Shown here piece after piece: positions 925-34,127 of a stretch of 64,000 bases of DNA. Source of the DNA: Rebecca billardiae RCC1528 (Eukaryota; Protista; Haptophyta); NCBI GenBank assembly GCA_965240325.2, contig OZ251242.1, positions 806,001 through 870,000 on the forward strand, written 5' to 3'. The position numbers were made by a program, and so were the translations under genes. The notes beneath the pieces are model-generated. The model saw only the letters and a program-made list of their open reading frames with translations. It ran no database searches and was not told where the DNA came from. The first letter of the stretch is position 1; every line of letters begins with the position of its first letter.

Positions 925-1222
925 CACTCGGTGCGCGGTGGCGCGACGGGGCCAAGTCGCAACCGGCCGGCGCGTGCTCGCGGCAGCCGCCGATGGAGAC
1001 GCAGGCGGCGTGTGACGCACGCGAGATGTGTAGTGATGTCTCTGAGCAAACGCGGGTGCTCCGTGCTCCGGCTGCCCGAGTGTCAGGCAACAGCACATAA
1101 CAATGATGCACGCCTTACTACCCTATCAATACTACTACGATACAATCGTAGTCGACGAAATCCGCCGCGCAACGGTCATCGTGAGCACAACGAGGGACGC
1201 GCGCAGGCGAGCTCCGGACGAC

Positions 1223-3055
1223 ATGGAGCCCTCGCGCAAGCGCCCAGCGCTCGCGGACGACGGCGCCGCCGCCGCGTCCCCGGTCTTCGAGGTGCCGTGC
1301 GCGCTATGCGGCGATCGTATTGGCAGCCAGCCTTGGGCGCAGCTCGCGTGCGGCGACGAGCACGTCGCGCACAACGTGTGCCTCTTCCAGCGCGCGCTCG
1401 CGTCCGAGCGCTGCGTCGTGCGGTGCGGCCGGCCGGGGTGCAAGCGCGTGACGAAGGCGGCGTCGGCGAGGACGCAATACGACGGCATTCACGAGCTCGG
1501 CTCTTGGCGGCATATCGACGTGGCGACGTGCACCGGTTGCGCCGCGCTGGATGGGTCGACCGCCATGCAGCGCGAGCCGCCTCCCAGCGACACTGCGGCA
1601 ACGCCGACGATGACAGCTGGACTCACGCTGTGCGACCTGCCGACGGACGTGGTCTCGCGCATCCTCGGCTGGCTCGAGTGCGTGCATGATCTGGCGAGTG
1701 CTAACGCCACGTCGCGCCTCTTCCGCGGCGCGCCCGGCGAACGCTCGCCGGTGGAGCACGCGCTGCGCGAGCGCGCGCGGCGGCGCGGGCACGAGGGCGC
1801 GCTGCCGGCGGCTCTCCCCACTGGCGCGTGCTCGTGGAGGGCGGAGCTGTTCGCGCGCGAGCGTGTGCTGGAGCACGCGGATGCGTATGCGTGCGTGGCC
1901 GTATGCGGCAGCCAAGTCAATGTGCATTGTGCGCTCAGCGCGTTCGTGGATGCATCGGGCGGGCTGCACACGTGCGGTGAGGAGTCTGGTGAGGCGGGGC
2001 TGTGCGCGCCCGCTGCGCTGGGCCATCCGGAGCTGCGCGGCTCAGCCGTCCTCGTGCCGACGCGCGTGGTATCGCTCTCGGCGGTGTGCATGCGTGCGGT
2101 GGCTGCTGGCTATCGACACCTGCTCGCGCTGAGCGACGGTGGTGCCGTGTACGCATGCGGTGAGAATCACCACGGCCAGCTGGGCCTGGGCGACAAGGAG
2201 ACGCGCAGTGTCTTCACCGCGCTGGGCGTAAGCAGCATGGGGCTCGTCGTGGGCATCGCCGCTGGTGGGTCCCACAGCCTCGCGCTCACTGCAGCGGGCG
2301 GTGTGTACAGCTGGGGATGGAACGAGGACAGCCAGCTCGGCCATGGCGACAGTGAGAACCGGCTGGAGCCTGTGCGCATCGAGGCGCTGGACGGCGTGCG
2401 CGTGGGCGGCATGTGCGCGGGCTGGAAGCACACGCTGCTGCTGTCGATGGGCGGTGCCGTGTACTCGTGCGGTGTCGGCGAAGCAGGCGGCCTCGGGCAT
2501 GGCGACGAGCGCACTCTGCGCATGCCGCAGCGCATCGAGGCGCTGGAGGGCGTGCGCGCCGTGCATGTGAGCGCTGGTGATGATCATAGTTTGGTGGTGG
2601 ACGCCACGGGCGGTGTGCACTCGTTCGGGTCTGGCTTGTTGGGCTGCCTTGGTCATGGTGACGACTCCGACGCACTCGTGCCTAGGCGCATCGAGGCGCT
2701 GCAGGGCGTGCGCATCGTGCGCGCCAGCGCGGGCAGCCAGTGCAGCGCGGTGATGGGCGTGGACGGCAGCGTGTACACCTTTGGCGACAACACAAGCGGC
2801 GAGCTCGGCATCGGCTCAGCTGGTGCAGATCAGCTGCTTCCGGTGCGCGTGCACGCCCCAGCGCATGGCCAGCTGGTGGAGTGCTTTCTCGATTACCGCC
2901 AGGCGCTTTGGGTCGCGTCAGACGGCAGCGCGTACTCGTGTGGCAGGCAGTCTGCAGCGCTCGGCCGCGGTGTGATCTCTGACGACGGGATGGACGACCT
3001 CATCTCACCTGCGCGGATTGCGCAGCTGCCACCCTTGCGGCGCCGGGGTGCGTAG
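1223..3055 (+). CDS. RING-like/F-box-like/RCC1-repeat protein, copy 1
   Basis: MEPSRK start shared with paralogues; CxxC..C-x3-H-x2-H-x2-C..C-x4-C cluster; LCDLPTDVVSRILGWL F-box-like motif; RCC1 repeats. Confidence 0.9.
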   Translation: MEPSRKRPALADDGAAAASPVFEVPCALCGDRIGSQPWAQLACGDEHVAHNVCLFQRALASERCVVRCGRPGCKRVTKAASARTQYDGIHELGSWRHIDVATCTGCAALDGSTAMQREPPPSDTAATPTMTAGLTLCDLPTDVVSRILGWLECVHDLASANATSRLFRGAPGERSPVEHALRERARRRGHEGALPAALPTGACSWRAELFARERVLEHADAYACVAVCGSQVNVHCALSAFVDASGGLHTCGEESGEAGLCAPAALGHPELRGSAVLVPTRVVSLSAVCMRAVAAGYRHLLALSDGGAVYACGENHHGQLGLGDKETRSVFTALGVSSMGLVVGIAAGGSHSLALTAAGGVYSWGWNEDSQLGHGDSENRLEPVRIEALDGVRVGGMCAGWKHTLLLSMGGAVYSCGVGEAGGLGHGDERTLRMPQRIEALEGVRAVHVSAGDDHSLVVDATGGVHSFGSGLLGCLGHGDDSDALVPRRIEALQGVRIVRASAGSQCSAVMGVDGSVYTFGDNTSGELGIGSAGADQLLPVRVHAPAHGQLVECFLDYRQALWVASDGSAYSCGRQSAALGRGVISDDGMDDLISPARIAQLPPLRRRGA

Positions 3056-3391
3056 CTGACTCGGTGCGCGGTGCCGGTGGCGCGGGGCCAAGTCGCAACC
3101 GGCTGGCGCGTGCTCGTGGCAGCCGCCGATGGAGACGCAGGCGCGGCGCGTGACGGCACGTGAGCCGTGTATCAATAGTGACGTCAGTGCTCAAGCAAAC
3201 GCGGGTGCTCTGGCTGCCCGAGTAGGCAACAGCACACTGGACGATGATGAACGCCTTACCCCCATAGGCATACGGTTTATAATGCTTATGCTGTACCCGC
3301 CTATCAAAGAGTAGTACAATCGACGAAATCCGCCGCCCAAGCCGAAGGGGATCGTGATCACAACGACCGCGCGCGAGCTCGGGACGACAGC

Positions 3392-5227
3392 ATGATGGAG
3401 CCCTCGCGCAAGCGCTCAGCGCTCGCGGGCGACGGCGCCGCCGCCGCGTCCCCGGTCTTCGATGAGCCGTGCGCACTGTGCGGCGATCGTATTGGCAGCC
3501 AGCCATGGGCGCAGCTCGCGTGCGGCGACGAGCACGTCGCGCACAACGTGTGCCTCTTCCAGCGCGCGCTCGTGTCCGAGCGCTGCGTCGTGCGGTGCGG
3601 CCGGCCGGGGTGCAAGCGCGCGACGAAGGCGGCGTCGGCGAGGACGCAGTTCGACGGCATTCACGAGCTCGGCTCTTGGCGGCATGTCGATGTGGCGACG
3701 TGCACGGGCTGCTCTGCGCCCAACGGGGCGACAGGCGTGCAGCGCGAGCCGCCGCCCAGCCACACGGCGGCAGCACCAACAGAGACGGCAGGCCTCACGC
3801 TGTGTGACCTGCCGACGGACGCGATCTCGCGTATCCTCGGCTGGCTCGAGTGCGCGCATGATCTGGCGCGTGCCAACGCCACGTCGCGCCTCTTCCGCGG
3901 CGCGCCCGGCGAACGCTCGCCGGTGGAGCACGCGCTGCGCGAGCGCGCGCGGCGGCGCGGGCACGAGGGCGCGCTGCCGGCGGCTCTCCCCACGGGCGCG
4001 TGCTCGTGGCGTGCGGAGCTGTTCGCGCGCGAGCGTGTGCTGGAGCACGTGGATGCGCATGCGTGCGTGGCAGTATGCGGCAGCCAAGCCGATGTGCAAA
4101 GTGCGATCAGCGCGTTCGTGGATGGATCGGGCGGGCTGCACACGTGCGGTGAGGAGTCTGGTGAGACCGGGCTGTGCGCGCCCGCTGCGCTGGGCCATCC
4201 GGAGCTGCGCAACTCAGCCGTCCTCGTGCCGACGCGCGTGGCATCGCTCTCGGCGGTGCGCATGCGTGCGGTGGCTGCTGGCTATGGTCACCTGCTCGCG
4301 CTGAGCGACGGTGGTGCCGTGTACGCGTGCGGTGAGAATTATTACGGCCAGCTGGGCCTGGGCGACAAGGAGACGCGCAGTGTCTTTACCGCGCTGGGCA
4401 TGAGCAGCATGGGGCTCGTCGTGGGCATCGCCGCTGGTGGGTCCCACAGCCTCGCGCTCACTGCAGCGGGCGGTGTGTACAGCTGGGGATGGAACCAGGA
4501 CAGCCAGCTCGGCCATGGCGACAGTGAGAACCGGCTGGAGCCTGTGCGCATCGAGGCGCTGGACGGTGTGCGCATGGGCGGCATGTGCGCTGGCTGGAAG
4601 CACACGCTGCTGCTGTCGATGGGCGGTGCCGTGTACTCGTGCGGTGTCGGCGAAGCAGGCCGCCTCGGGCATGGCGACGAGCGCACTCTGCGCATGCCGC
4701 AGCGCATCGAGGCGCTGGAGGGCGTGCGCGCCGTGCACGTGAGCGCTGGTGATGATCATAGTTCGGTGGTGGATGCCACGGGCGGTGTGCACTCGTTTGG
4801 GAAGGACATTGGTGGTTGCCTTGGTCATGGTGACGACTCCGACGCACTCGTGCCTAGGCGCATCGAGGCGCTGCAGGACGTGCGCATCGTGCGCGCCAGC
4901 GCGGGCTGCCAGTGCAGCGCGGTGATGGGCGCGGACGGCAGCGTGTACACGTTTGGCTCCAACGACCACGGCCAGCTCGGCATCGGCTCAGCCGGTGCGA
5001 ATCAGCTGCTTCCGGTGTGCGTGCACGCCCCAGCGCACGGCCAGCTGGTGGACTGCTTTCTCGATTACCGCCAGGCGCTTTGGATCACGTCGGATTGCGT
5101 TGCGCTCTCGTGTGGCAGGCAGTCTGCAGCGCTCGGCCACGGTGTGAGCTCTGTCGACGGGATGGACGACCTCATCTCACCTGCACGGATTGCGCAGCTG
5201 CCGCCCCTGCGGCGCCGGGGTGCGTAG
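3392..5227 (+). CDS. RING-like/F-box-like/RCC1-repeat protein, copy 2 (B-type N-terminus)
   Basis: Intact 611-aa ORF, same architecture. Confidence 0.9.
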   Translation: MMEPSRKRSALAGDGAAAASPVFDEPCALCGDRIGSQPWAQLACGDEHVAHNVCLFQRALVSERCVVRCGRPGCKRATKAASARTQFDGIHELGSWRHVDVATCTGCSAPNGATGVQREPPPSHTAAAPTETAGLTLCDLPTDAISRILGWLECAHDLARANATSRLFRGAPGERSPVEHALRERARRRGHEGALPAALPTGACSWRAELFARERVLEHVDAHACVAVCGSQADVQSAISAFVDGSGGLHTCGEESGETGLCAPAALGHPELRNSAVLVPTRVASLSAVRMRAVAAGYGHLLALSDGGAVYACGENYYGQLGLGDKETRSVFTALGMSSMGLVVGIAAGGSHSLALTAAGGVYSWGWNQDSQLGHGDSENRLEPVRIEALDGVRMGGMCAGWKHTLLLSMGGAVYSCGVGEAGRLGHGDERTLRMPQRIEALEGVRAVHVSAGDDHSSVVDATGGVHSFGKDIGGCLGHGDDSDALVPRRIEALQDVRIVRASAGCQCSAVMGADGSVYTFGSNDHGQLGIGSAGANQLLPVCVHAPAHGQLVDCFLDYRQALWITSDCVALSCGRQSAALGHGVSSVDGMDDLISPARIAQLPPLRRRGA

Positions 5228-5429
5228 CACTCGGTGCGCGGTGGCGCGGGGCCAAGTCGCAACCGGCCGGCGCGTGCTCGCGGCAGCCGCCGATGGAGAC
5301 GCAGGCGGCGCGTGACGGCACGCGAGCCGTGTAGTGATGTCTGTGAGCAAACGCGGGTGCTCCGTGCTCCGGCTGCCCGAGTGTCAGGCAACAGCACATA
5401 ACAATGATGCACGCCTTACCCCAATCAAT

Positions 5430-6754
5430 GGTTGTATAACCGCTCGGTTATGCGGGTATAACTCACCGGTAGCCCTCATGAGGGCGGGCTGGCAGCCAGG
5501 GTCCGGCTGCCTGGAGGTTTTCCGGTCGTCAAGCCGAGCCAGGCCCGGATTGGGCGCGGGCCTGGATTGGCTCAGCAGCTTGGCAAGCCATGCGCGTCTG
5601 GGTGCGGCCGCGCTCGCTGGCTGCACCCGCGGCGCGGCGGCCGGCGTGGCTGCTCTGGTCACCGCTGCGCTGGTGGCTGCTCCTCCTCTGGGAGTTGTTT
5701 CTTCCAGGTGCGTGTGCGTCGGCGGTAGGCCGCCCTCAGCCCTCGCTCTCTCCACTCGTGCACCTGCCCTGCTTGCTCTCTGCTTTCGATGGGGGCGCCT
5801 CGGAGCCGCTTCGAGGCGTCCCCGTCTGCAATCTTCTCATGCTCTATCTGCTTTCGATGGGGGCGCCTCGGAGCCGCTTCGAGGCGTCCCCGTCTGCAAT
5901 CTATCTTCTCATGCTCTGCTTTCGATGGGGGCGCCTCGGAACCGCTTCGAGGCGTCCCCGTCTGCAATCTTCTCATGCTCTGCTTTCAATGGGGGCGCCT
6001 CGGAACCGCTTCGAGGCGTCCCCGTCTGCAATCTTCTCATGCTCTGCTTTCGATGGGGGCGCCTGGGAACCGCTCCCAGGCGTCCCCGTCTGCAATCTTC
6101 TCACGCTTCGCAGTCTCGCTTGCCTTCATCGCCTGGCGGGTGGGTGCTGCTCTCTCCTTCTCTGCCGCCTCCTCTGCAGTCTGCCGTGCACTGCTGTGTG
6201 TGGGATGCGACCTGCTACCTTATCTGACGCTACGCGTGCGTGTCTCGCGCCTGCTTCCCGCCTGCGCCGCCGCCGCCGCGCATGTTTTCGTGCCCACTGT
6301 CTCATGCCGTCTGGATCGTCCTTACTCATACAACCCTGCGGGGAGCCCCTCTGGGCCTCTGCCGCCTTCGGTCCTCGCGCTACCCCTTCGGCGGCCTCGG
6401 CCTCTTCGGGCCCCCGGCCACCACCCCTGCGGGGTGTGGCATTCCACACCTCCTTCTGGGTGGAGGCCCTCGAGGCCTCTGCCTCCTGCGGCGCCGCGCT
6501 CTGCCCAAACTTGCGTTGGGGGGGGGCGTCGGCTGCCAGCGCCTGCGGTCTACGTGCTCCATCGAGTACTTCCTCTTCGGCGTCTAGGCGGTCATCGGCT
6601 TCTGTCGGCGTAGTTGCTCGAATGCATCGGCGAGTCCTTCCTGGTCGGCGTCGCATCCTGGACGGCTTCGGGGGTGTGACCTAGTCACCTCACGCGTTTA
6701 TCAACGCGGCCCCCACCTCAATCTACTCTCATGTGGGTCTACCGAGTGAGTTAT
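5430..6754 (-). mobile_element. Non-autonomous element with asymmetric subterminal inverted repeats and terminal hairpin (Helentron/HINE-like), long copy
   Basis: Absent from other spacers; hairpin ATAACCG-CT-CGGTTAT at 5436-5451; imperfect IR 5458-5482 vs 6728-6754; internal tandem repeats; no clear TSD. Strand inferred from the HINE convention. Confidence 0.65.
5775..6107. repeat. Five 64/68-bp tandem repeats, each a strong hairpin
   Basis: TGCTTTC(G/A)ATGGGGGCGCCT units at 5781, 5849, 5917, 5981, 6045. Confidence 0.9.
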
Positions 6755-7387
6755 GGTTGTATAACCGCTCGGTTATGCGGGTATAACTCACCGGTAGCCC
6801 TCATGAGGGCGGGCTGGCAGCCAGGGTCCGGCTGCCTGGAGGTTTTCCGGTCGTCAAGCCGAGCCAGGCCCGGATTGGGCGCGGGCCTGGATTGGCTCAG
6901 CAGCTTGGCAAGCCATGCGCGTCTGGGTGCGGCCGCGCTCGCTGGCTGCACCCGCGGCGCGGCGGCCGGCGTGGCTGCTCTGGTCACCGCTGCGCTGGTG
7001 GCTGCTCCTCCTCTGGGAGTTGTTTCTCCCTGCCCTCCCACCCTGCTGGTTGCTGGGTGGGCATGGCCTTGGGTGCGCGCGGTGTCGGGGGGGTGGAGGC
7101 CCTCGAGGCCTCTGCCTCCTGCGGCGCCGCGCTCTGCCCAAACTTGCGTTGGGGGGGGGCGTCGGCTGCCAGCGCCTGCGGTCTACGTGCTCCATCGAGT
7201 ACTTCCTCTTCGGCGTCTAGGCGGTCATCGGCTTCTGTCGGCGTAGTTGCTCGAATGCATCGGCGAGTCCTTCCTGGTCGGCGTCGCATCCTGGACGGCT
7301 TCGGGGGTGTGACCTAGTCACCTCACGCGTTTATCAACGCGGCCCCCACCTCAATCTACTCTCATGTGGGTCTACCGAGTGAGTTAT
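6755..7387 (-). mobile_element. Second, internally deleted tandem copy of the same element
   Basis: Both ends match copy 1; the centre (about 5703-6458 equivalent) is replaced by about 65 bp of different sequence. Confidence 0.7.
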
Positions 7388-7481
7388 ACTACTACTACGA
7401 TACAATCGTAGTCGACGAAATCCGCCGCCCAACGGTCATCGTGAGCACACGACCGCGCGCGCAAGGCGAGCTCCGGACGAC

Positions 7482-9311
7482 ATGGAGCCCTCGCGCAAGC
7501 GCTCGCTCGCGGACGACGGCGCCGCCGCCGCGTCCCCGGTCTTCGAGGTGCCGTGCGCGCTGTGCGGCGATCGTATTGGCAGCCAGCCGTGGGCGCAGCT
7601 CGCGTGCGGCGACGAGCACGTCGCGCACAACGTGTGCCTCTTCCAGCGCGCGCTCGCGTCCGAGCGCTGCGTCGTGCGGTGCGGCCGGCCGGGGTGCAAG
7701 CGCGTGACGAAGGCGGCGTCGGCGAGGACGCTATACGACGGCATTCACGAGCTCGGCTCTTGGCGGCATGTCGATGTGGCGACGTGCACCGGCTGCGCCG
7801 CGCTGGATGGGTCGACCGCCATGCAGCGCGAGCCGCCTCCCAGCGACACTGCGGCAACGCCGACGATGACAGCTGGACTCACGCCGTGCGACCTGCCGAC
7901 GGACGTGGTCTCGCGCATCCTCGGCTGGCTCGAGTGCGCGCATGATCTGGCGCGTGCTAACGCCACGTCGCGCCTCTTCCGCGGCGCGCCCGGCGAACGC
8001 TCGCCGGTGGAGCACGCGCTGCTCGAGCGCGCGCGGCAGCGCGGGCATGAGGGCGCGCTGCCGGCGGTTCTCCCCGCGGGCGCGTGCTCGTGGCGGGCGG
8101 AGCTGTTCGCGCGCGAGCGTGTGCTGGAGCACGCGTATGCGCATGCGTGCGTGGCCGTATGCGGCTGCGATTTCGATGTGCAAAGTGCGCTCAGCGCGTT
8201 TGTGGATGCATCGGGCGGGCTGCACACGTGCGGTGAGGAGTCTGGTGAGGCGGGGCTGTGCGCGCCCGCTGCGCTGGGCCATCCGGAGCTGCGCGGCTCA
8301 GCCGTCCTCGTGCCGACGCGCGTGGCATCGCTCTCGGCGGTATGCATGCGTGCGGTGGCTGCTGGCTATCGACACCTGCTCGCGCTGAGCGACTGTGGTG
8401 CCGTGTACGCATGCGGTGAGAATCACCACGGCCAGCTGGGCCTGGGCGACAAGGAGGCGCGCCGTGTCTTCACCGCGCTGGGCATGAGCAGCATGGGGCT
8501 CGTCGTGGGCATCGCCGCTGGTGCATACCACAGCCTCGCGCTCACTGCAGCGGGCGGTATGTACAGCTGGGGATTGAACCACAGCGGCCAGCTCGGCCAC
8601 GGCGACACTGAGTACCGGCTGGAGCCTGTGCGCATCGAGGCGCTGGACGGCGTGCGCGTGGGCGGCATGTCCGCGGGCTGGGGGCACACGCTGCTGCTGT
8701 CGATGGGCGGTGCGGTGTACTCGTGCGGTGTCGGCGACGCAGGCCGCCTCGGGCATGGCGACCAGCGCACTCTGCGCACGCCGCAGCGCATCGAGGCGCT
8801 AGAGGGCGTGCGCGCCGTGCACGTGAGCGCGGGCGAGAATCACAGCCTGGTGGTGGATGCCACAGGCGGTGTGCACTCGTTCGGGTGTGGGGATTGCGGT
8901 TGCCTTGGCCATGGTGACACCTCCGACACACTCGTGCCCAGGCGCATCGAGGCGCTGCAGGGCGTGCGCATCGTGCGCGCCTGCGCAGGCTGTGATTGCA
9001 GCGCGGTGATGGGCGCGGACGGCAGCGTGTACACGTTTGGCTACAACGAGCGCGGCCAGCTTGGCATCTTCTTAGCTGGTGCAGATCAGCTGCTTCCGGT
9101 GCGCGTGCACGCCCCAGCGCATGGCCAGCTGGTGGAGTGCTTTCTCGACTGGCGCCAGGCGCTTTGGGTCGCGTCAGACGGCAGCGCGTACTCGTGTGGC
9201 AGGCAGTCTGCAGCGCTCGGCCACGGTGTGATCTCTGACGACGGGATGGACGACCTCATCTCACCTGCGCGGATTGCGCAGCTGCCACCCTTGCGGCGCC
9301 GGGGTGCGTAG
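7482..9311 (+). CDS. RING-like/F-box-like/RCC1-repeat protein, copy 3
   Basis: Intact 609-aa ORF, same architecture. Confidence 0.9.
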   Translation: MEPSRKRSLADDGAAAASPVFEVPCALCGDRIGSQPWAQLACGDEHVAHNVCLFQRALASERCVVRCGRPGCKRVTKAASARTLYDGIHELGSWRHVDVATCTGCAALDGSTAMQREPPPSDTAATPTMTAGLTPCDLPTDVVSRILGWLECAHDLARANATSRLFRGAPGERSPVEHALLERARQRGHEGALPAVLPAGACSWRAELFARERVLEHAYAHACVAVCGCDFDVQSALSAFVDASGGLHTCGEESGEAGLCAPAALGHPELRGSAVLVPTRVASLSAVCMRAVAAGYRHLLALSDCGAVYACGENHHGQLGLGDKEARRVFTALGMSSMGLVVGIAAGAYHSLALTAAGGMYSWGLNHSGQLGHGDTEYRLEPVRIEALDGVRVGGMSAGWGHTLLLSMGGAVYSCGVGDAGRLGHGDQRTLRTPQRIEALEGVRAVHVSAGENHSLVVDATGGVHSFGCGDCGCLGHGDTSDTLVPRRIEALQGVRIVRACAGCDCSAVMGADGSVYTFGYNERGQLGIFLAGADQLLPVRVHAPAHGQLVECFLDWRQALWVASDGSAYSCGRQSAALGHGVISDDGMDDLISPARIAQLPPLRRRGA

Positions 9312-9577
9312 CTGACTCGGTGCGCGGTGCCGGTGGCGCGGGGCCAAGTCGCAACCGTGAACCGGCTGGCGCGTGCTCGTGGCAGCCGCCGATGGAGACG
9401 CAGGCGCGGCGCGTGACGGCACGTGAGCCGTGTATCATAGTGACGTCAGTGCTCAAGCAAACGCGGGTGCTCTGGCTGCCCGAGTAGGCAACAGCACACT
9501 GGACGATGATGAACGCCTTACCCCCATAGGCATACGGTTTATAATGCTTATGCTGTACCCGCCTATCAAAGAGTAGT

Positions 9578-10371
9578 TTTAAATTCCCCTTTATTATAAC
9601 GGGCTCCGGGTGATCAGGCTGGCGGCCGAAGCCTCCAGCCCTACCCTGGCCAGCCCCCAACCAACCACCACCCTCACCCAACCTCAAACCACTGACCGAG
9701 ACACCTAGTGTCTTGACACCACTCCACTGTGGACAGCCCGCCTCCAGAGGGGGCGGGGGTATGCCATTGCCAACAGCATACGAGCCCAACACTGTGGGGT
9801 GGTCCCAGGTACAAGCAGTGTACGGCCTTGCAATTCAAGATCATCGAGTTTGAGCCGAGTCGGCAGCAGGGGCACCCCCTAGGGTGCCCCAGTGTGGGCA
9901 GAGGGCCAGCCACTAGCCGATCCCTGCGCGGGGAAGGGAACTGAGGGGACTGTCATCGAGCCCAGTAGCTGGGCAGGGGTCTGGGCCACTGGCCCTGGCA
10001 GCGAGGCGCCTGTATTTCACTCGTGCAGCTATGGAGGCAGAGGGGGTCATGTCAGACATGTGTGCTACATCGGGCATCAAGTCCGGGCGCGGGCCGCTGT
10101 AGGAAGCAAGCAAAGTGGTGGCGATGGCTAATACGCCTGGGGAGGTGTCGTTCGCTCGCCTCCGTTCCTGCTGCGCTGTGCAGGGGGTAGCGTGCTCCGC
10201 TGCGGCACATTTGCCTGGCGGGGTGGGCAGTGTCGTTTGGGCGGAGGGCTGTCCTGCTGCGCTTGACTAGGAGGAGGCAGCCCGCGCCTGGGGGCTGCCG
10301 GTGGCCTGGCAGAGCCAGCAGGCGGCTGTGCGGCCTGCTGTCCCGTGTCTGACTGTGTAAGGTCGCTATGA
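9578..10371 (-). mobile_element. 794-bp insertion with TAGT target duplication (possible retroelement-derived fragment)
   Basis: Empty site GAGTAGTACAAT at 3309-3320; TAGT at 9574-9577 and 10372-10375; minus-strand AATAAA at 9590-9595 near one end; no recognisable ORF. Confidence 0.65.
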
Positions 10372-10451
10372 TAGTACAATCGACGAAATCCGCCGCCCAA
10401 GCCGAAGGGGATCGTGATCACAACGACCGCGCGCGAGCTCGGGACGACAGC

Positions 10452-12287
10452 ATGAAGGAGCCCTCGCGCAAGCGCTCAGCGCTCGCGGACGACGGCGCCG
10501 CCGCCGCGTCCCCGGTCTTCGATGAGCCGTGCGCGCTGTGCGGCGATCGTATTGGCAGCCAGCCATGGGCGCAGCTCGCGTGCGGCGACGAGCACGTCGC
10601 GCACAACGTGTGCCTCTTCCAGCGCGCGCTCGCGTCCGAGCGCTGCGTCGTGCGGTGCGGCCGGCCGGGGTGCAAGCGCGCGACGAAAGCGGCGTCGGCG
10701 AGGACGCAGTTCGACGGCATTCACGAGCTCGGCTCTTGGCGGCATGTCGATGTGGCGACGTGCACGGGCTGCTCTGCGCCCAACGGGGCGACAGGCGTGC
10801 AGCGCGAGCCGCCGCCCAGCCACACGGCGGCAGCACCAACAGAGACGGCAGGCCTCACGCTGTGCGACCTGCCGACGGACGCGATCTCGCGTATCCTCGG
10901 CTGGCTCGAGTGCGCGCATGATCTGGCGCGTGCCAACGCCACGTCGCGCCTCTTCCGCGGCGCGCCCGGCGAACGCTCGCCGGTGGAGCACGCGCTGCGC
11001 GAGCGCGCGCGGCGGCGCGGGCACGAGGGCGCGCTGCCGGCGGCTCTCCCCACGGGCGCGTGCTCGTGGCGTGCGGAGCTGTTCGCGCGCGAGCGTGTGC
11101 TGGAGCACGTGGATGCGCATGCGTGCGTGGCAGTATGCGGCAGCCAAGCCGATGTGCAAAGTGCGATCAGCGCGTTCGTGGATGCATCGGGCGGGCTGCA
11201 CACCTGCGGTGAGGAGTCTGGTGAGACCGGGCTGTGCGCGCCCGCTGCGCTGGGCCATCCGGAGCTGCGCAACTCAGCCGTCCTCGTGCCGACGCGCGTG
11301 GCATCGCTCTCGGCGGTGCGCATGCGTGCGGTGGCTGCTGGCTATGGTCACCTGCTCGCGCTGAGCGACGGTGGTGCCGTGTACGCGTGCGGTGAGAATT
11401 TTTACGGCCAGCTGGGCCTGGGCGACAAGGAGACGCGCAGTGTCTTTACCGCGCTGGGCATGAGCAGCATGGGGCTCGTCGTGGGCATCGCCGCTGGTGG
11501 GTCCCACAGCCTCGCGCTCACTGCAGCGGGCGGTGTGTACAGCTGGGGATGGAACCAGGACAGCCAGCTCGGCCATGGCGACAGTGAGAACCGGCTGGAG
11601 CCTGTGCGCATCGAGGCGCTGGACGGCGTGCGCGTGGGCGGCATGTGCGCTGGCTGGAAGCACACGCTGCTGCTGTCGATGGGCGGTGCCGTGTACTCGT
11701 GCGGTGTCGGCGAAGCAGGCCGCCTCGGGCATGGCGACGAGCGCACTCTGCGCATGCCGCAGCGCATCGAGGCGCTAGAGGGCGTGCGCGCCGTGCACGT
11801 GAGCGCGGGCGAGAATCACAGCCTGGTGGTCGATGCCACGGGCGGTGTGCACTCGTTTGGGTCTCACTCGTTTGGTTGCCTTGGCCATGGTGACACCTCC
11901 GACGCACTCGTGCCCAGGCGCATCGAGGCGCTGCAGGGCGTGCGCATCGTGCGCGCCAGCGCGGGCAGCCAGTGCAGCGCGGTGATGGGCGTGGACGGCA
12001 GCGTGTACACCTTTGGCGACAACACAAGCGGCGAGCTCGGCATCGGCTCAGCTGGTGCAGATCAGCTGCTTCCGGTGCGCGTGCACGCCCCAGCGCATGG
12101 CCAGCTGGTGGAGTGCTTTCTCGACTGGCGCCAGGCGCTTTGGGTCGCGTCAGACGGCAGCGCGTACTCGTGTGGCAGGCAGTCTGCAGCGCTCGGCCGC
12201 GGTGTGATCTCTGACGACGGGATGGACGACCTCATCTCACCTGCGCGGATTGCGCAGCTGCCACCCTTGCGGCGCCGGGGTGCGTAG
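10452..12287 (+). CDS. RING-like/F-box-like/RCC1-repeat protein, copy 4 (B-type N-terminus)
   Basis: MKEPSRK start; intact ORF. Confidence 0.9.
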   Translation: MKEPSRKRSALADDGAAAASPVFDEPCALCGDRIGSQPWAQLACGDEHVAHNVCLFQRALASERCVVRCGRPGCKRATKAASARTQFDGIHELGSWRHVDVATCTGCSAPNGATGVQREPPPSHTAAAPTETAGLTLCDLPTDAISRILGWLECAHDLARANATSRLFRGAPGERSPVEHALRERARRRGHEGALPAALPTGACSWRAELFARERVLEHVDAHACVAVCGSQADVQSAISAFVDASGGLHTCGEESGETGLCAPAALGHPELRNSAVLVPTRVASLSAVRMRAVAAGYGHLLALSDGGAVYACGENFYGQLGLGDKETRSVFTALGMSSMGLVVGIAAGGSHSLALTAAGGVYSWGWNQDSQLGHGDSENRLEPVRIEALDGVRVGGMCAGWKHTLLLSMGGAVYSCGVGEAGRLGHGDERTLRMPQRIEALEGVRAVHVSAGENHSLVVDATGGVHSFGSHSFGCLGHGDTSDALVPRRIEALQGVRIVRASAGSQCSAVMGVDGSVYTFGDNTSGELGIGSAGADQLLPVRVHAPAHGQLVECFLDWRQALWVASDGSAYSCGRQSAALGRGVISDDGMDDLISPARIAQLPPLRRRGA

Positions 12288-12509
12288 CTGACTCGGTGCG
12301 CGGTGCCGGTGGCGCGGAGCCAAGTCGCAACCGGCCGGCGCGTGCTCGTGGCAGCCGCCGATGGAGACGCAGGCGGCGCGTGACGGCACGCGAGCCGTGT
12401 AGTGATGTCTGTGAGCAAACGCGGGTGCTCCGTGCTCCGGCTGCCCGAGTGTCAGGCAACAGCACATAACAATGATGCACGCCTTATCCCTATCAATACT
12501 ACTACGATA

Positions 12510-12563
12510 TAGGCTGTCCGACTCTACACCCCCGTAGCCAGCGGAGGGGGGCCGGACAGGCTA
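12510..12563. mobile_element. 54-bp miniature inverted-repeat element
   Basis: TIR TAGGCTGTCCG / CGGACAGGCTA (1 mismatch); 9-bp TSD ACTACGATA at 12501-12509 and 12564-12572; empty site at 1131-1145. Confidence 0.8.
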
Positions 12564-12650
12564 ACTACGATACAATCGTAGTCGACGAAATCCGCCGCCC
12601 AACGGTCATCGTGAGCACACGACCGCGCGCGCAGGCGAGCTCCGGACGAC

Positions 12651-14480
12651 ATGGAGCCCTCGCGGAAGCGCCCAGCGCTCGCGGACGACGGCGCCGCCGC
12701 CGCGTCCCCGGTCTTCGAGGAGCCGTGCGCGCTGTGCGGCGATCGTATTGGTAGCCAGCCGTGGGCGCAGCTCGCGTGCGGCGACGGGCACGTCGCGCAC
12801 AACGTGTGCCTCTTCCAGCGCGCGCTCGCGTCCGAGCGCTGCGTCGTGCGGTGCGGCCGGCCGGGGTGCAAGCGCGTGACGAAGGCGGCGTCGGCGAGGA
12901 CGCAGTACGACGGCATTCACGAGCTCGGCTCTTGGCGGCATGTCGATGTGGCGACGTGCACCGGCTGCGCCGCGCTGGATGGGTCGACCGCCATGCAGCG
13001 CGAGCCGCCTCCCAGCGACACTGCGGCAACGCCGACGATGACAGCTGGACTCACGCTGTGCGACCTGCCGACGGACGTGGTCTCGCGCATCCTCGGCTGG
13101 CTCGAGTGCGCGCATGATCTGGCGCGTGCTAACGCCACGTCGCGCCTCTTCCGCGGCGCGCCCGGCGAACGCTCGCCGGTGGAGCACGCGCTGCGCGAGC
13201 GCGCGCGGCGGCGCGGGCACGAGGGCGCGCTGCCGGCGGCTCTCCCTGCGGGCGCGTGCTCGTGGCGGGCGGAGCTGTTCGCGCGCGAGCGTGTGCTGGA
13301 GCATGCAGATGAGCACGTGTGCGTGGCCGTATGCGGCAGCTACAATGAGGGTCGGGCGTTTAGCGCGTTTGTGGACGCATCGGGCGGGCTGCACACGTGC
13401 GGTGAGGAGCCGGGCGAGGATGAGCCAAACGCGCCCGCTGCGCTGGGCCATCCGGAGCTGCGCGGCTCGGCGGTCCTCGTGCCGACGCGCGTGGCATCGC
13501 TCTCGGCGGTGTGCATGCGTGCGGTGGCTGCTGGCTATCGACACCTGCTCGCGCTGAGCGACGGTGGTGCCGTGTACGCGTGCGGTGAGAATTCTTACGG
13601 CCAGCTGGGCCTGGGCGACAAGCAGGCGCGCCGTGTCTTCACCGCGCTGGGCATGAGCAGCATGGGGCTCGTCGTGGGCATCGCCGCTGGTGGAGACCAC
13701 AGCCTCGCGCTCACCGCAGCGGGCGGAGTGTACAGCTGGGGATGGAACCATTACGGCCAGCTCGGCCACGGCGACACTGCGAATCGGCTGGAGCCTGTGC
13801 GCATCGAGGCGCTGGAGGGTGTGCACGTGGGCGGCATGTCCGCGGGTGGCGGGCACACGCTGCTGCTGTCGACGAGCGGCGCCGTGTACTCATGCGGTGA
13901 CGGCGAAGCAGGCCGCCTCGGGCATGGCGACGAGCGCACTCTGCGCATGCCGCAGCGCATCGAGGCGCTGGAGGGCGTGCGCGCCGTGCACGTGAGCGCG
14001 GGCGAGGATCACAGCCTGGTGGTCGATGCCACGTGCGGTGTGCACTGGTTCGGGTGGGGGGATTGCGGTTGCCTTGGCCATGGTGACACCTCCGCCACAC
14101 TCGTGCCCAGGCGCATCGAGGCGCTGCAGGGCGTGCGTATCGTGCGCGCCAGCGCGGGCTGGATCAGCAGCGCGGTGATGGGCACGGACGGCAGCGTGTA
14201 CACCTTTGGCTACAACGAGCACGGCCAGCTCGGCATCGGCCCAGCTGGTGCAGATCAGCTGCTTCCGGTGCGCGTGCACGACCCAGCGCACGGCCAGCTG
14301 GTGGACTGCTTTCTCGAGTACCGCCAGGCGCTTTGGATCACGTCGGATTGCGTTGCGCTCTCGTGTGGCAGGCAGTCTGCAGCGCTCGGCCACGGTGTGA
14401 GCTTTGACGACGGGATGGACGACCTCGTCTCTCCTGCGCAGATTGCGCAGCTGCCGCCCCTGCGGCGCCGGGGTGCGTAG
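12651..14480 (+). CDS. RING-like/F-box-like/RCC1-repeat protein, copy 5
   Basis: Intact 609-aa ORF; most divergent loop set. Confidence 0.9.
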   Translation: MEPSRKRPALADDGAAAASPVFEEPCALCGDRIGSQPWAQLACGDGHVAHNVCLFQRALASERCVVRCGRPGCKRVTKAASARTQYDGIHELGSWRHVDVATCTGCAALDGSTAMQREPPPSDTAATPTMTAGLTLCDLPTDVVSRILGWLECAHDLARANATSRLFRGAPGERSPVEHALRERARRRGHEGALPAALPAGACSWRAELFARERVLEHADEHVCVAVCGSYNEGRAFSAFVDASGGLHTCGEEPGEDEPNAPAALGHPELRGSAVLVPTRVASLSAVCMRAVAAGYRHLLALSDGGAVYACGENSYGQLGLGDKQARRVFTALGMSSMGLVVGIAAGGDHSLALTAAGGVYSWGWNHYGQLGHGDTANRLEPVRIEALEGVHVGGMSAGGGHTLLLSTSGAVYSCGDGEAGRLGHGDERTLRMPQRIEALEGVRAVHVSAGEDHSLVVDATCGVHWFGWGDCGCLGHGDTSATLVPRRIEALQGVRIVRASAGWISSAVMGTDGSVYTFGYNEHGQLGIGPAGADQLLPVRVHDPAHGQLVDCFLEYRQALWITSDCVALSCGRQSAALGHGVSFDDGMDDLVSPAQIAQLPPLRRRGA

Positions 14481-14777
14481 CACTCGGTGCGCGGTGGCGT
14501 GGAGCCAAGTCGCAACCAGCCGGCGCGTGCTCGCGGCAGCCGCCGATGGAGATGCAGGCGGCGCGTGACGGCACGCGAGCCGTGTAGTGATGTCTCTGAG
14601 CAAACGCGGGTGCTCCGTGCTCCGGCTGCCCGAGTGTCAGGCAACAGCACATAACAATGATGCACGCCTTACTACCCTATCAATACTACTACGATACGAC
14701 AATCGTAGTCGACGAAATCCGCCGCCCAACGGTCATCGTGAGCACACGACCGCGCGCGCAGGCGAGCTCCGGACGAC

Positions 14778-16601
14778 ATGGAGCCCTCGCGCAAGCGCTC
14801 GCTCGCGGACGACGGCGCCGCCGCCGCGTCCCCGGTCTTCGAGGTGCCGTGCGCGCTTTGCGGCGATCGTATTGGCAGCCAGCCGTGGGCGCAGCTTGCG
14901 TGCGGCGACGAGCACGTCGCGCACAACGTGTGCCTCTTCCAGCGCGCGCTTGCGTCCGAGCGCTGCGTCGTGCGGTGCGGCCGTCCGGGGTGCAAGCGCG
15001 TGACGAAGGCGGCGTCGGCGATGACGCAATACGACGGCATTCACGAGCTCGGCCCTTGGCGGCATGTCGATGTGGCGACGTGCACCGGCTGCGCCGCGCT
15101 GGATGGGTCGACCGCCATGCAGCGCGAGCCGCCTCCCAGCGACACTGCGGCAACGCCGACGATGACAGCTGGACTCACGCTGTGCGACCTGCCGACGGAC
15201 GTGGTCTCGCGCATCCTCGGCTGGCTCGAGTGCGTGCATGATCTGGCGCGTGCTAACGCCACGTCGCGCCTCTTCCGCGGCGCGCCCGGCGAACGCTCGC
15301 CGGTGGAGCACGCGCTGCGCGAGCGCGCGCGGCGGCGCGGGCACGAGGGCGCGCTGCCAGCGGTTCTCTCCGCGGGCGCGTGCTCGTGGCGGGCGGAGCT
15401 GTTCGCGCGCGAGCGTGTGCTGGAGCACGCGTATGCGCATGCGTGCGTGGCCGTATGCGGCATCGATGAGCAGTGTGCGTTCAGCGCGTTCGTGGATGCA
15501 TCGGGCGGGCTGCACACGTGCGGTGAGGAGTCTGGTGACACGGGGCTGCGCGCGCCCGCTGCATTGGGCCATCCGGAGCTGCGCGACTCGGCCGTCCTCG
15601 TGCCGACGCGCGTGGCATCGCTCTCGGCGGTGTGCATGCGTGCGGTGGCTGCTGGCTATCGACACCTGCTCGCGCTGAGCGACGGTGGTGCCGTGTACGC
15701 GTGCGGTGAGAATTCTTACGGCCAGCTGGGCCTGGGCGACAAGGAGACACGCAGTGTCTTCACCGCGCTGGGCATGAGCAGCATGGGGCTCGTCGTGGGC
15801 ATCGCCGCTGGTGGGTCCCACAGCCTCGCGCTCACTGCAGCGGGCGGTGTGTATAGCTGGGGATGGAACCAGGACAGCCAGCTCGGCCACGGCGACAGTG
15901 AGAACCGGCTGGAGCCTGTGCGCATCGAGGCGCTGGACGGCGTGCGCGTGGGCGGCATGTGCGCTGGCTGGAAGCACACGCTGCTGCTGTCGATGGGCGG
16001 TGCCGTGTACTCGTGCGGTGTCGGCGAAGCAGGCCGCCTCGGGCATGGCGACGAGCGCACTCTGCGCATGCCGCAGCGCATCGAGGCGCTGGAGGGCGTG
16101 CGCGCCGTGCACGTGAGCGCTGGTGATGATCATAGTTTGGTGGTGGACGTCACGGGCGGTGTGCACTCGTTTGGGGGGGGCTCGTGTGGTTGCCTTGGTC
16201 ATGGTGACGACTCCGACGCACTCGTGCCTAGGCGCATCGAGGCGCTGCAGGGCGTGCGCATCGTGCGCGCCAGCGCGGGCAGCCAGTGCAGCGCGGTGAC
16301 GGGCGTGGACGGCAGCGTGTACATCTTTGGCGACAACACAAGCGGCGTGCTCGGCATCGGCTCAGCTGGTGCAGATCAGCCGCTTCCGGTGCGCGTGCAC
16401 GCCCCAGCGCATGGCCAGCTGGTGGAGTGCTTTCTCGACTGGCGCCAGGCGCTTTGGGTCGCGTCAGACGGCAGCGCGCACTCGTGTGGCAGGCAGTCTG
16501 CAGCGCTCGGCCACGGTGTGAGCTTTGACGACGGGATGGACGACCTCGTCTCTCCTGCGCGGATTGCGCAGCTGCCACCCCTGCGGCGCCGGGGTGCGTA
16601 G
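14778..16601 (+). CDS. RING-like/F-box-like/RCC1-repeat protein, copy 6
   Basis: Intact 607-aa ORF. Confidence 0.9.
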   Translation: MEPSRKRSLADDGAAAASPVFEVPCALCGDRIGSQPWAQLACGDEHVAHNVCLFQRALASERCVVRCGRPGCKRVTKAASAMTQYDGIHELGPWRHVDVATCTGCAALDGSTAMQREPPPSDTAATPTMTAGLTLCDLPTDVVSRILGWLECVHDLARANATSRLFRGAPGERSPVEHALRERARRRGHEGALPAVLSAGACSWRAELFARERVLEHAYAHACVAVCGIDEQCAFSAFVDASGGLHTCGEESGDTGLRAPAALGHPELRDSAVLVPTRVASLSAVCMRAVAAGYRHLLALSDGGAVYACGENSYGQLGLGDKETRSVFTALGMSSMGLVVGIAAGGSHSLALTAAGGVYSWGWNQDSQLGHGDSENRLEPVRIEALDGVRVGGMCAGWKHTLLLSMGGAVYSCGVGEAGRLGHGDERTLRMPQRIEALEGVRAVHVSAGDDHSLVVDVTGGVHSFGGGSCGCLGHGDDSDALVPRRIEALQGVRIVRASAGSQCSAVTGVDGSVYIFGDNTSGVLGIGSAGADQPLPVRVHAPAHGQLVECFLDWRQALWVASDGSAHSCGRQSAALGHGVSFDDGMDDLVSPARIAQLPPLRRRGA

Positions 16602-16810
16602 CACTCGGTGCGCGGTGGCGCGGGGCCAAGTCGCAACCGGCCGGCGCGTGCTCGCGGCAGCCGCCGATGGAGACGCAGGCGGCGCGTGACGGCACGCGAG
16701 CCGTGTAGTGATGTCTCTGAGCAAACGCGGGTGCTCCGTGCTCCGGCTGCCCGAGTGTCAGGCAACAGCACATAACAATGATGCACGCCTTACCCCTATC
16801 AATACTACTA

Positions 16811-16853
16811 ATCACGCCTTAACCAAGTGTGCACGTTAAAACATAGTAAACTG
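16811..16853 (-). mobile_element. 43-bp TA-flanked insertion, probable Tc1/mariner-type terminus remnant
   Basis: Minus strand reads TA-CAGTTTACTATGTTTTAACGTGC; TA on both sides; related sequence at 48745-48773 and 52430-52439. Confidence 0.5.
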
Positions 16854-16939
16854 TACGATACACTCGTAGTCGACGAAATCCGCCGCGCAACGGTCATCGT
16901 GAGCACAACGATCGCCCGCGCAGGCGAGCTCCGGACGAC

Positions 16940-18760
16940 ATGGAGCCCTCGCGCAAGCGCTCGCTCGCGGACGACGGCGCCGCCGCCGCGTCCCCGGTCT
17001 TCGAGGTGCCGTGCGCGCTTTGCGGCGATCGTATTGGCAGCCAGCCGTGGGCGCAGCTCGCGTGCGGCGACGAGCACGTCGCGCACAACGTGTGCCTCTT
17101 CCAGCGCGCGCTCGCGTCCGAGCGCTGCGTCGTGCGGTGCGGCCGTCCGGGGTGCAAGCGCGTGACGAAGGCGGCGTCGGCGAGGACGCTATACGACGGC
17201 ATTCACGAGCTCGGCTCTTGGCGGCATGTCGATGTGGCGAAGTGCACCGGCTGCGCCGCGCTGGATGGGTCGACCGCCATGCAGCGCGAGCCGCCTCCCA
17301 GCGACACTGCGGCAACGCCGACGATGACAGCTGGACTCACGCTGTGCGACCTGCCGACGGACGTGGTCTCGCGCATCCTCGGCTGGCTCGAGTGCGTGCG
17401 TGATCTGGCGCGTGCTAACGCCACGTCGCGCCTCTTTCGCGGCGCGCCCGGCGAACGCTCGCCGGTGGAGCACGCGCTGCGCGAGCGCGCGCGGCGGCGC
17501 GGGCACGAGGGCGCGCTGCCAGCGGTTCTCTCCGCGGGCGCGTGCTCGTGGAGGGCGGAGCTGTTCGCGCGCGAGCGTGTGCTGGAGCACGCGGATGCGC
17601 ATGCGTGCGTGGCCGTATGCGGCATCGATGTGCAGTGTGCGTTCAGCGCGTTCGTGGATGCATCGGGCGGGCTGCACACGTGCGGTGAGGAGTCTGGTGA
17701 CACGGGGCTGCGCGCGCCCGCTGCATTGGGCCATCCGGAGCTGCGCGACTCGGCCGTCCTCGTGCCGACGCGCGTGGCATCGCTCTCGGCGGTGTGCATG
17801 CGTGCGGTGGCTGCTGGCTATCGACACCTGCTCGCGCTGAGCGACGGTGGTGCCGTGTACGCGTGCGGTGAGAATTCTTACGGCCAGCTGGGCCTGGGCG
17901 ACAAGGAGACGCGCAGTGTCTTCACCGCGCTGGGCATGAGCAGCATGGGGCTCGTCGTGGGCATCGCCGCTGGTGGGTCCCACAGCCTCGCGCTCACTGC
18001 AGCGGGCGGTGTGTACAGCTGGGGATGGAACCAGGACAGCCAGCTCGGCCATGGCGACAGTGAGAACCGGCTGGAGCCTGTGCGCATCGAGGCGCTGGAC
18101 GGCGTGCGCGTGGGCGGCATGTGCGCTGGCTGGAAGCACACGCTGCTGCTGTCGATGGGCGGTGCCGTGTACTCGTGCGGTGTCGGCAGAGGAGGCCGCC
18201 TCGGGCATGGCGACCAGCAACCCCTGCGCACGCCGCAGCGCATCGAGGCGCTGGAGGGCGTGCGCGCCGTGCACGTGAGCGCTGGTGATGATCATAGTTT
18301 GGTGGTGGACGTCACAGGCGGTGTGCACTCGTTCGGGCGGCGCTCGTGTGGTTGCCTTGGTCATGGTGACGACTCCGACGCACTCGTGCCTAGGCGCATC
18401 GAGGCGCTGCAGGGCGTGCGCATCGTGCGCGCCAGCGCGGGCAGCCAGTGCAGCGCGGTGATGGGCGTGGACGGCAGCGTGTACACCTTTGGCGACAACA
18501 CAAGCGGCGTGCTCGGCATCGGCTCAGCTGGTGCGAGTCCGCCGCTTCCGGTGCGCGTGCACGCCCCAGCGCACGGCCAGCTGGAGTGCTTTCTCGATTG
18601 GGGCCAGGCGCTTTGGATCACGTCAGACGGCGGCGCGCACTCGTGTGGCAGGCAGTCTGCAGCGCTCGGCCGCGGTGTGAGCTCTGACGACGGGATGGAC
18701 GACCTCATCTCACCTGCGCGGATTGCGCAGCTGCCACCCTTGCGGCGCCGGGGTGCGTAG
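16940..18760 (+). CDS. RING-like/F-box-like/RCC1-repeat protein, copy 7 (last in array)
   Basis: Intact 606-aa ORF. Confidence 0.9.
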   Translation: MEPSRKRSLADDGAAAASPVFEVPCALCGDRIGSQPWAQLACGDEHVAHNVCLFQRALASERCVVRCGRPGCKRVTKAASARTLYDGIHELGSWRHVDVAKCTGCAALDGSTAMQREPPPSDTAATPTMTAGLTLCDLPTDVVSRILGWLECVRDLARANATSRLFRGAPGERSPVEHALRERARRRGHEGALPAVLSAGACSWRAELFARERVLEHADAHACVAVCGIDVQCAFSAFVDASGGLHTCGEESGDTGLRAPAALGHPELRDSAVLVPTRVASLSAVCMRAVAAGYRHLLALSDGGAVYACGENSYGQLGLGDKETRSVFTALGMSSMGLVVGIAAGGSHSLALTAAGGVYSWGWNQDSQLGHGDSENRLEPVRIEALDGVRVGGMCAGWKHTLLLSMGGAVYSCGVGRGGRLGHGDQQPLRTPQRIEALEGVRAVHVSAGDDHSLVVDVTGGVHSFGRRSCGCLGHGDDSDALVPRRIEALQGVRIVRASAGSQCSAVMGVDGSVYTFGDNTSGVLGIGSAGASPPLPVRVHAPAHGQLECFLDWGQALWITSDGGAHSCGRQSAALGRGVSSDDGMDDLISPARIAQLPPLRRRGA

Positions 18761-18987
18761 CTGACTCGGTGCACGGTGCCGGTGGCGCGGGGCCAAGTCG
18801 CAACCGGCCGGCGCGTGCTCGTGGCAGCCGCCGATGGAGACGCAGGCGGCGCGTGACGGCACGCGAGCCGTGTAGTGATGTCTGTGAGCAAACGCGGGTG
18901 CTCCGTGCTCCGGCTGCCCGAGTGTCAGGCAACAGCAGCACATAGCAATGATGCACGCCTTACCCCTATCAATAGACAATACTACTA

Positions 18988-19526
18988 CAGGGTCGTCCCC
19001 AACAATTGTTCGGACACTGATTTTTGCTGATGACTACGCGGCTGCTAACGATGAGATGGGCCAGAGGCTCACATGAGCGCCATGGACCTTACTCCTCGGA
19101 TGACGACAGGGTGTGGGTGCAGCGAGCGGCGCGCTCAGCGTGTGGCCAGGGCTGGCTTGGATGTACAGCTCAACCGACTAGCGGTTGGCTCTGAAGGCAG
19201 GTCCACGGAGCCCCCGCGGGTGGCATGCCTGCTAAAATTCGTATCTGGCGCACGGTTGCATTTGGCGGCGGGTGGGTTGGTGCGCGCAGGCTGGTGGGTC
19301 TCCAGCGTTCGCTGCGGGTAGTGGCGCCGACTGTAGCCCTTGCCTGCACGGCCAGAGCCGATCGATGGGCTGTGCAGCAGCTGTGCAAGCGAGGCCGCGC
19401 AACTGGTAAGTGGTAGGCTGGTCCGATCGGGCCGTATATACTCCTGGTGTAGCGCTACGTCCCGGGGCTTGCCCAGGGCTGTCGAGCGCATGCCGCATAG
19501 TCATCGACCATGCCACGTAATATACT
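18988..19526. mobile_element. Foreign sequence ending the array at the spacer hotspot (possible mariner-like end)
   Basis: Array homology stops at TACTACTA|CAGGGTCGTCCCCAACAATTGT; a relic of the array 3' flank resumes at about 19528-19566; no matching second TIR found. Confidence 0.35.
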
Positions 19527-19939
19527 GAGTCGCAACCGGCCGGCGCGGCTCGTGGCAACCGCCGATATACGCGAGACTTCCATCAAGGTGAAGGTCTCGG
19601 ACAAGGACGAGTGACTATACTACTACTGGAAGTTGGACGGTGCGTCGTAGTATTTACGTAACTCAGCGCAGAGTATACTGCTTGGTCGTGATGACTGATG
19701 ATGGTCGCGCCGCGCGGCGACCGCGACGGTCGACGTGCTACTATATATATATAGCAGCAGTGTCGATCTATCATCACGCCTGCAGTCGCTGGTAACTCAC
19801 GTGACGACAGCTGTCAGCTGGTAACGAGTCCGGTCGTCGTCGCCGATCAGCATCAGTATATTCATTATTCAGTCGTTACAGTCATCCGAGCCGCTGTCGA
19901 TTCTAAACTACGCGACTACAGGCGGATGATCATCTGCTG

Positions 19940-32937: not shown

Positions 32938-33535
32938 GCAGTGCTTCCTCGGCCTCGTTCATACTTCATCTTTTCAGACGAAGTCGAATGGCGTCGTATT
33001 GTTTAAGCTGCGCGCAGCGCAGTTATTCATCACGAACACGGACGAACGGCACCTGCTCGCGCCACTCACGGGTGATCGATGACGGGCGGGTCGGGCGGGC
33101 CGGATGAGGCCACTAGTCACTACTCTGCGCACTGCATGAAGTGTCGTCTGATAATATATATATATATATCGCGATTATTATAAATTATCGTCGACGCGAC
33201 GAATTTATCGATATCGGCCCGACCGCCCGACGAATCCGACGATGTGATTGTGAGTATGTCACCGATGGCGCCCCCAGATATATTAGTAATTAAGTAATTT
33301 AAAATCATATATATATATATATATATTTAACGACGTGGCAGCATCGGACAAGCGTCAGGCTCAGAGTGCAACAGACACATGGAATGCGTCCGCGCCATCC
33401 GTCCAGGTCAGACAGTGCGCCACCCGCAGCCCTGCCCCCCTACGGGAGCGGGGCCGGGATGGAGCACCGCCTCGGCCTGGGGCACGCGGCGGCGACGGCA
33501 GATGCCGCCGCGGCCGAGCGCCTTCCGGAGCACTT

Positions 33536-33790: not shown

Positions 33791-33925
33791 CGCCGGCGGG
33801 CTGCTGCAGATGCAGTCAGCAGTGCTTGATGCTGGGGAACCTGGCCCCTGGGCGCGTCACACCCCGCACCCCCTGCCCCACCTAGGGTGGAGCGAAGGGC
33901 ACGGAGGAGGCCAGCGCCAAGGGCC

Positions 33926-34127
<202 letters not shown>

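Follow-up and report, generated by a model that had tools for sequence, protein, structure and literature searches.

Can one short stretch of DNA serve as the insertion site of many unrelated mobile elements, and if so, what makes it so receptive? This question is raised by a tandem gene array in the haptophyte alga Rebecca billardiae RCC1528, whose assembly comprises 72 Mb in 41 contigs with a GC content of about 70%. The window analysed here is a stretch of 64,000 nucleotides (contig OZ251242.1, referred to as C25; C25:806001-870000), and its first 19 kb are a tandem array of intronless genes of about 608 residues each. Counting 10 kb fetched upstream, the array consists of nine genes, one and a half of which precede the window. 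Their products show a weak F-box-like match together with strong matches to RCC1 repeats. Consecutive genes are separated by a spacer of about 300 bp with three parts, namely a conserved left half after the stop codon, an AT-rich island of about 45 bp, and a right half of about 70 bp, likewise conserved, before the ATG. The island lies 80-94 bp ahead of every ATG. AT content peaks there within the 2.1-kb unit: the best 30-mer is 67% AT, compared with 30% unit-wide, and 8 of the 25 TA dinucleotides of the unit fall within the island.

Mobile elements that are dispersed and for the most part recent were found in six of the ten islands, each belonging to a different family (A to F). The six insertion points all lie at positions 16-30 of the aligned island, i.e., within about 15 bp. 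Under uniform insertion, the probability that six points fall into 15 bp of a 300-bp spacer is ~5e-7, and it is still only 0.02 when insertion is confined to the 45-bp island. The array island is a multi-family insertion hotspot, at which unrelated families occupy the same short site. The initial annotation of this DNA had already described unrelated element types converging upstream of the ATG, uninterrupted open reading frames (ORFs) and foreign DNA after the last island; all of this holds, with six families at 80-94 bp, nine intact coding sequences and a dispersed repeat (family F) as the foreign DNA, and the coordinates that it gave for every insert and indel proved correct on re-reading.

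These insertions appear to be separate events. For families A, C, D and E, duplicated target sites were found together with matching empty alleles elsewhere in the array. Moreover, families A, B and C match other copies in the genome at 99-100% identity, whereas the nucleotide identity of the nine array genes is 91-97.6% (the units differ by 2.4-9%), which indicates that the insertions are younger than the units and mutually independent. Copies of every family are present on many other contigs; thus, none of these elements is specific to the array.

The inserted families

Family A is a miniature inverted-repeat transposable element (MITE) in spacer 0 (C25:804197-805110), upstream of the window, where a copy of 607 bp (C25:804406-805012) is flanked by a TA duplication. 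Its inverted ends of ~23 bp (TGGAGCG...) contain two mismatches, and TA was duplicated in all six copies examined. At least 168 candidates were found in the genome, those scored being 97-100% identical; the genome candidate numbers given for families A, B, C and F are first-look lower bounds. The insertion in spacer 0 uses the same TA as the family E piece in spacer 7, which comprises the terminal 43 nt of that family (16811-16853, minus strand) with TA on both sides (16809-16810 and 16854-16855). Family E is abundant and CAGTTTAC-ended, and its inverted ends start with CAGTTTACTATG. A 25-mer from the inner end of the 43-nt piece has 387 genome matches, distributed nearly equally over the two strands (195 and 192), and a 20-mer has 528; the matches listed were exact, and the controls gave 0. 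Judged by their TA duplication and inverted ends, families A and E would be classified as Tc1/mariner-type MITEs. Like the Stowaway-like members of this type, both families have a TA duplication and terminal inverted repeats, and family E has a CAGT-type end; the spacer-7 copy of family E differs in being a single 43-nt end. Another MITE, family D, was found in spacer 5. It is only 54 bp long (12510-12563), carries the terminal inverted repeat TAGGCTGTCCG, and is bounded by the 9-bp duplication ACTACGATA (12501-12509 and 12564-12572). In the genome, its terminal 24-mer is matched 32 times with ≤3 mismatches, versus 0 times for the control.

Spacer 3 contains family B, a minus-strand insert of 1,958 bp (5430-7387) between CAAT and ACTAC. 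It is a head-to-tail dimer of 1,325 + 633 bp, in which the second unit is internally shortened and the two units meet at the junction GAGTTAT|GGTTG without an intervening base. Read on the minus strand, the element has a ~25-bp repeat (ATAACTCAC..CATGAG) at its 5' end, with an inverted partner 28 nt inside the 3' end, and its 3' tail forms a hairpin with a 7-bp stem (ATAACCG..CGGTTAT). A five-copy hairpin repeat of 64-68 bp is located at 5767-6107. Target duplications were absent from the six copies examined, and the ORFs of family B in the window contained no Pfam domain, the element being non-coding. There are at least 76 candidates in the genome, several of which are full-length at 100% identity. 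Whole dimers identical (100%) to the spacer-3 copy also occur on several other contigs, indicating that the dimer moves or is copied as a unit. Helitron2 elements are marked by terminal inverted repeats that are asymmetric, the 3' one lying 20-40 bp inside the end, and by a terminal hairpin (PMC5148889). Family B has these hallmarks and, judged by its termini, is probably a Helitron2-like element; the inverted-repeat layout, the hairpin, the missing target duplication and the head-to-tail tandems are all shared with Helitron2, whereas family B was inserted at T|A and the paper lists TT-type sites (PMC5148889). We also considered an assignment to the Replitrons, which have short direct terminal repeats (PMC10288648), and ruled it out because family B has inverted repeats and a hairpin.

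Family C is a minus-strand insert of 794 bp in spacer 4 (9578-10371), flanked by TAGT at 9574-9577 and 10372-10375. Spacer 2 provides the exact empty site for this insertion. Copies of this family have a constant TTTAAATTCCCC end, while the other end is variably truncated (copies of 794, 841 and ≥1,060 bp), and the duplications differ in length between copies. The genome contains at least 563 candidates with 88-99% identity. This pattern is the one expected of 5'-truncated non-LTR (non-long-terminal-repeat) retroposons, and family C is accordingly described here as retroposon-like. No Pfam match to a reverse transcriptase was obtained for two ORFs at one longer family C locus, which is not a full-length copy; one of these ORFs lies within the element and the other in the flank past the alignable end.

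Family F, a dispersed repeat, is present in spacer 8 as a single copy of ~540 bp (18983-19522, with the left edge placed to within ~6 bases). At least 615 candidates with 92-96% identity were found in the genome, and elsewhere family F forms direct pairs 1.6-3.6 kb apart, like the terminal repeat of a retrotransposon. Directly after it, at 19528-19566 (plus strand), is a 39-bp relic of the left spacer half (its positions 36-75) with 95% identity. This arrangement suggests an element-associated deletion or rearrangement, and a further unit may formerly have been part of the array and since been deleted or rearranged. About 85 bp past the relic there is also an island-like sequence, GACTATACTACTACTGG.

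Islands without a mobile element and paralogous arrays

The shortest island allele is that of spacer 1 (1113-1156), which holds the palindrome CTACGAT-ACA-ATCGTAG. The initial annotation called it the empty site. Its coordinates and its status as the shortest allele are right, but since paralogous arrays have a longer island, it is not established that this allele represents the ancestral state. Two small length differences were revealed by aligning the spacers: a 3-bp indel in the otherwise empty island of spacer 6 (14698-14700), and an additional GACAATA in the last island (18975-18981), which forms an imperfect 7-bp tandem duplication. We conjecture that both could be excision footprints.

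A 32-bp segment in spacer 2 (3262-3293), which is repeated in spacer 4 (9524-9555), had been listed among the inserts as flanked by TACCC, but it does not hold as an insertion. The segment is non-dispersed, with only two copies genome-wide, namely those of spacers 2 and 4; a mini-MITE, considered as a candidate, was ruled out on this count. The two spacers differ by 0-1.4% from one another and by 11-19% from every other spacer, on both sides of the island. Given its two genome copies and the divergence on both sides, the segment is part of an old divergent haplotype, the left half of which is equally close to the paralogous arrays and to its own array. The similarity between the two copies of this haplotype extends beyond the spacers. 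A block of ≥1.5 kb (~2830-4311 and ~9090-11369, leaving out family C) is 98-100% identical; it begins ~200 bp ahead of the stop codon of the upstream gene, crosses the island and reaches at least to mid-length of the following gene. It reflects a recent duplication or gene conversion that took in the island.

The gene family has four more arrays or remnants, 85-89% identical and with homologous spacers, at C25:875-886 kb (minus strand), C25:1,010-1,019 kb, C25:1,042-1,051 kb and C5:~629-631 kb. Both spacer halves can be aligned with those of the present array at 75-95%, whereas the island cannot. The islands of these paralogous arrays carry family E pieces of differing subfamily and orientation, which, together with the conserved flanks, suggests that the same position has been hit repeatedly over a long time. 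Several paralogous islands (L033:4908-5020 and 7013-7131; L034:6579-6799 and 8870-9019) hold strings such as ACAGTACTGTACTGTACG, which resemble a stack of TA + CAG/CTG excision footprints from the CAGTTTAC-ended family.

Landing preference and competing explanations

To what extent does AT richness account for this hotspot? Among ten other copies of families A and B in the genome, seven occupy 50-mers that rank within the top ~7% for AT content in the surrounding 3 kb (binomial P ~8e-7), and several are located at a TA beside a family E end or in a (TAC)n-like context. Two of five other family A copies are at, or ≤3 bases from, a TA flanking a family E end (...TAGTAAACTGTA), and one family B copy is 8 bp from such an end; this proximity suggests that an element's end is a preferred target in its own right. 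Every dispersed element that genome searches and reading detected over the remaining 45 kb of the window adjoins or occupies an AT island. Genome searches placed dispersed repeats in or beside AT islands at 29171-29400 and at 63902-64000, the latter running off the window end. A high-copy element of ~620 bp (33307-33925), which has 95-99% identical copies on many contigs, abuts a (TA)101 microsatellite at 33926-34126, and a family-E-related element (CAGTTTATAATTAATTTGTTTTAACGTGCG...) extends from 48746 to ~48880 in an AT island, where it was inserted at CTACTACTA|CAGTTT next to a (TA)n run. In the paralogous array at C25:875-886 kb, three identical spacers of 517 bp are filled by the subfamily of the latter element. 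A scan for the ends of families A to E detected none in the rest of the window, and the E-related copy at 48746 was seen by eye.

The initial annotation had proposed a comparison of insertion density with other AT-rich intergenic sites, and a crude form of it was carried out. Elements are present in 6 of the 10 array islands versus 4 of 19 other AT regions of the window (Fisher P = 0.047), where the background census is a lower bound, with 39-40 candidates scored per genome search and one family dominant. Per base of AT-rich DNA, the array islands appear to hold ~10x as many elements as other islands; read against this minimum background, the Poisson P of the excess ranges from 1e-5 to 4e-3 as the number of assumed missed elements rises.

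We consider it rather likely that the island acts as a passive landing pad, with independent and recent hits in most copies. It would be the sole TA/AT-rich target in a 2.1-kb unit of a ~70% GC genome, and the elements active here would land preferentially in AT peaks. Hits in the coding sequence or the conserved blocks would be rare or removed by selection, while hits in the island would be tolerated, with nine redundant gene copies buffering damage to any one promoter. The right half of ~70 bp probably holds the core promoter and leader, and we infer that the left half carries the 3' end signals; with these signals in the flanks, the island would be the only tolerated target. The redundancy of nine copies plausibly relaxes selection on any one promoter, and both the effect of selection and that of redundancy are parts of this reading that we infer. 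As to the safe harbour suggested by the initial annotation, its AT-rich component thus persists as a passive landing pad in the AT maximum of the unit, while the break-prone driver of recombination that it also proposed is not supported (see below).

Several observations weigh against a purely passive pad. The availability of TA alone would place all six hits in the island with a probability of only (8/25)^6 ~0.001, and selection or a stronger context preference must therefore be assumed. No hits in the coding sequence were seen, although selection against them should be weak with nine copies. The apparent ~10x excess per base over other islands is also explained by redundancy only by assumption. 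These points leave room for an island that is intrinsically hot beyond its composition, at which a structure formed by the palindrome CTACGAT-ACA-ATCGTAG or a nucleosome-free state attracts many integration machineries. Even within the 45-bp island, the insertion points crowd into 15 bp (P ~0.02), mostly in the left arm of the palindrome; this and the apparent ~10x element density per AT-rich base (Poisson P ~1e-5 to 4e-3) are both consistent with such a site. However, the spacer-2/4 allele lacks the palindrome and was hit by family C all the same, as were the palindrome-free paralogous arrays by family E, and the background census behind the density is a lower bound; we regard an intrinsically hot island as conceivable but doubtful. 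Its strong form, in which a true landing pad is ~10x hotter per base through local structure or chromatin and is read by all integration machineries, seems unlikely to us. Were it true, DDE transposases, rolling-circle Rep proteins and target-primed reverse transcription would all read one feature, mobile elements in this GC-rich alga would be confined to a few such pads upstream of genes, and the copies of a diversifying array of receptor-like genes would each be rewired in their own way.

The other explanations turn to the history of the array itself. If the island were break-prone, as had been suggested initially, it could drive unequal exchange and array growth and capture elements during repair. 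The right end of the array does lie in the last island, followed by family F and the 39-bp spacer relic, and the first copies of the paralogous arrays start near the right edge of the island. Yet the one exchange block that is clearly recent, shared by spacers 2 and 4, extends across the island, with its left breakpoint in coding sequence ~200 bp before the stop codon. Breakpoints were further assessed by the correlation of left and right distance matrices, which are concordant across the island; without the spacer-2/4 pair they are uninformative everywhere, the other spacers differing by 1-4%, too little to place exchanges. Exchange breakpoints are not concentrated at the island, the array right end alone coinciding with it, and most inserts bear ordinary signatures of transposition rather than filler DNA. 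A break-prone island driving recombination is improbable overall, though conceivable for the array end. The insertions might also go back to a single ancestral junction laden with elements, which then decayed along different lines in the individual copies; they would in that case not be independent. In keeping with a common junction, paralogous array D has family E terminal repeats at the place homologous to that in spacer 7; they share one orientation, and TACG follows in both cases. Palindromic strings in paralogous islands, such as ACAGTACTGT, resemble old excision footprints as well. On the other hand, the six families are unrelated, families A, B and C show 99-100% identity to dispersed copies versus 2.4-9% divergence between units, the 43-nt piece of spacer 7 matches genome-wide sequence exactly, and filled and empty sites form clean pairs, as in spacers 4 and 2. 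Common descent is largely refuted for families A to D and F, and as a general explanation it is very improbable.

Insertion hotspots in AT-rich promoter-proximal DNA are known for the P element, mPing and other MITEs, Tf1 and Hermes. The present case is a very tight new example of this known phenomenon and reveals no new mechanism. As in those systems, different elements have independently hit AT-rich DNA just upstream of genes and spared the coding sequence, and nested or adjacent pile-ups occur. What differs here is that ten near-identical targets stand side by side, so that the hits of each family can be compared with an empty allele, and that the contrast is extreme, with a 67% AT island in a 70% GC unit. 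Tandem arrays also host site-specific elements, such as R1/R2 and Pokey in ribosomal DNA and SLACS/CZAR in spliced-leader arrays. The likeness lies in a redundant array that tolerates hits in some of its copies and in one recurring position of the unit; in contrast, those elements are single families that are confined to their arrays and use a sequence-specific nuclease, while here six dispersed families inserted at points spread over ~15 bp.

With ten near-identical promoter-proximal targets, six of which carry a different element with empty alleles alongside, the array amounts to a natural replicate experiment. It allows the target choice of several transposon classes to be read in a little-studied GC-rich algal genome, and it permits a copy-by-copy question, namely how an insertion 85 bp upstream of the ATG affects expression. 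Mobile DNA in this genome resides mainly in AT islands, which is relevant to genome annotation and to the choice of neutral integration sites.

Genes of the array

Within the window, all array genes are on the plus strand. Gene 1 is represented by its 3' part (1-924); it starts 899 bases before the window, and the joined ORF is intact, with 1,824 nt encoding a member of the RCC1 repeat family. It is followed by gene 2 (1223-3055), with F-box-like and RCC1 repeat matches, and by genes 3 (3395-5227), 4 (7482-9311), 5 (10452-12287), 6 (12651-14480) and 7 (14778-16601), up to the last copy, gene 8 (16940-18760), each of them intact. The first gene of the array, upstream of the window, lacks the conserved right spacer half in its upstream region (C25:802200-802390). 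Before its ATG there are only GCTCCCGGAC and a CCTTACTAATGAC string, which gives this gene a promoter context unlike that of all other copies.

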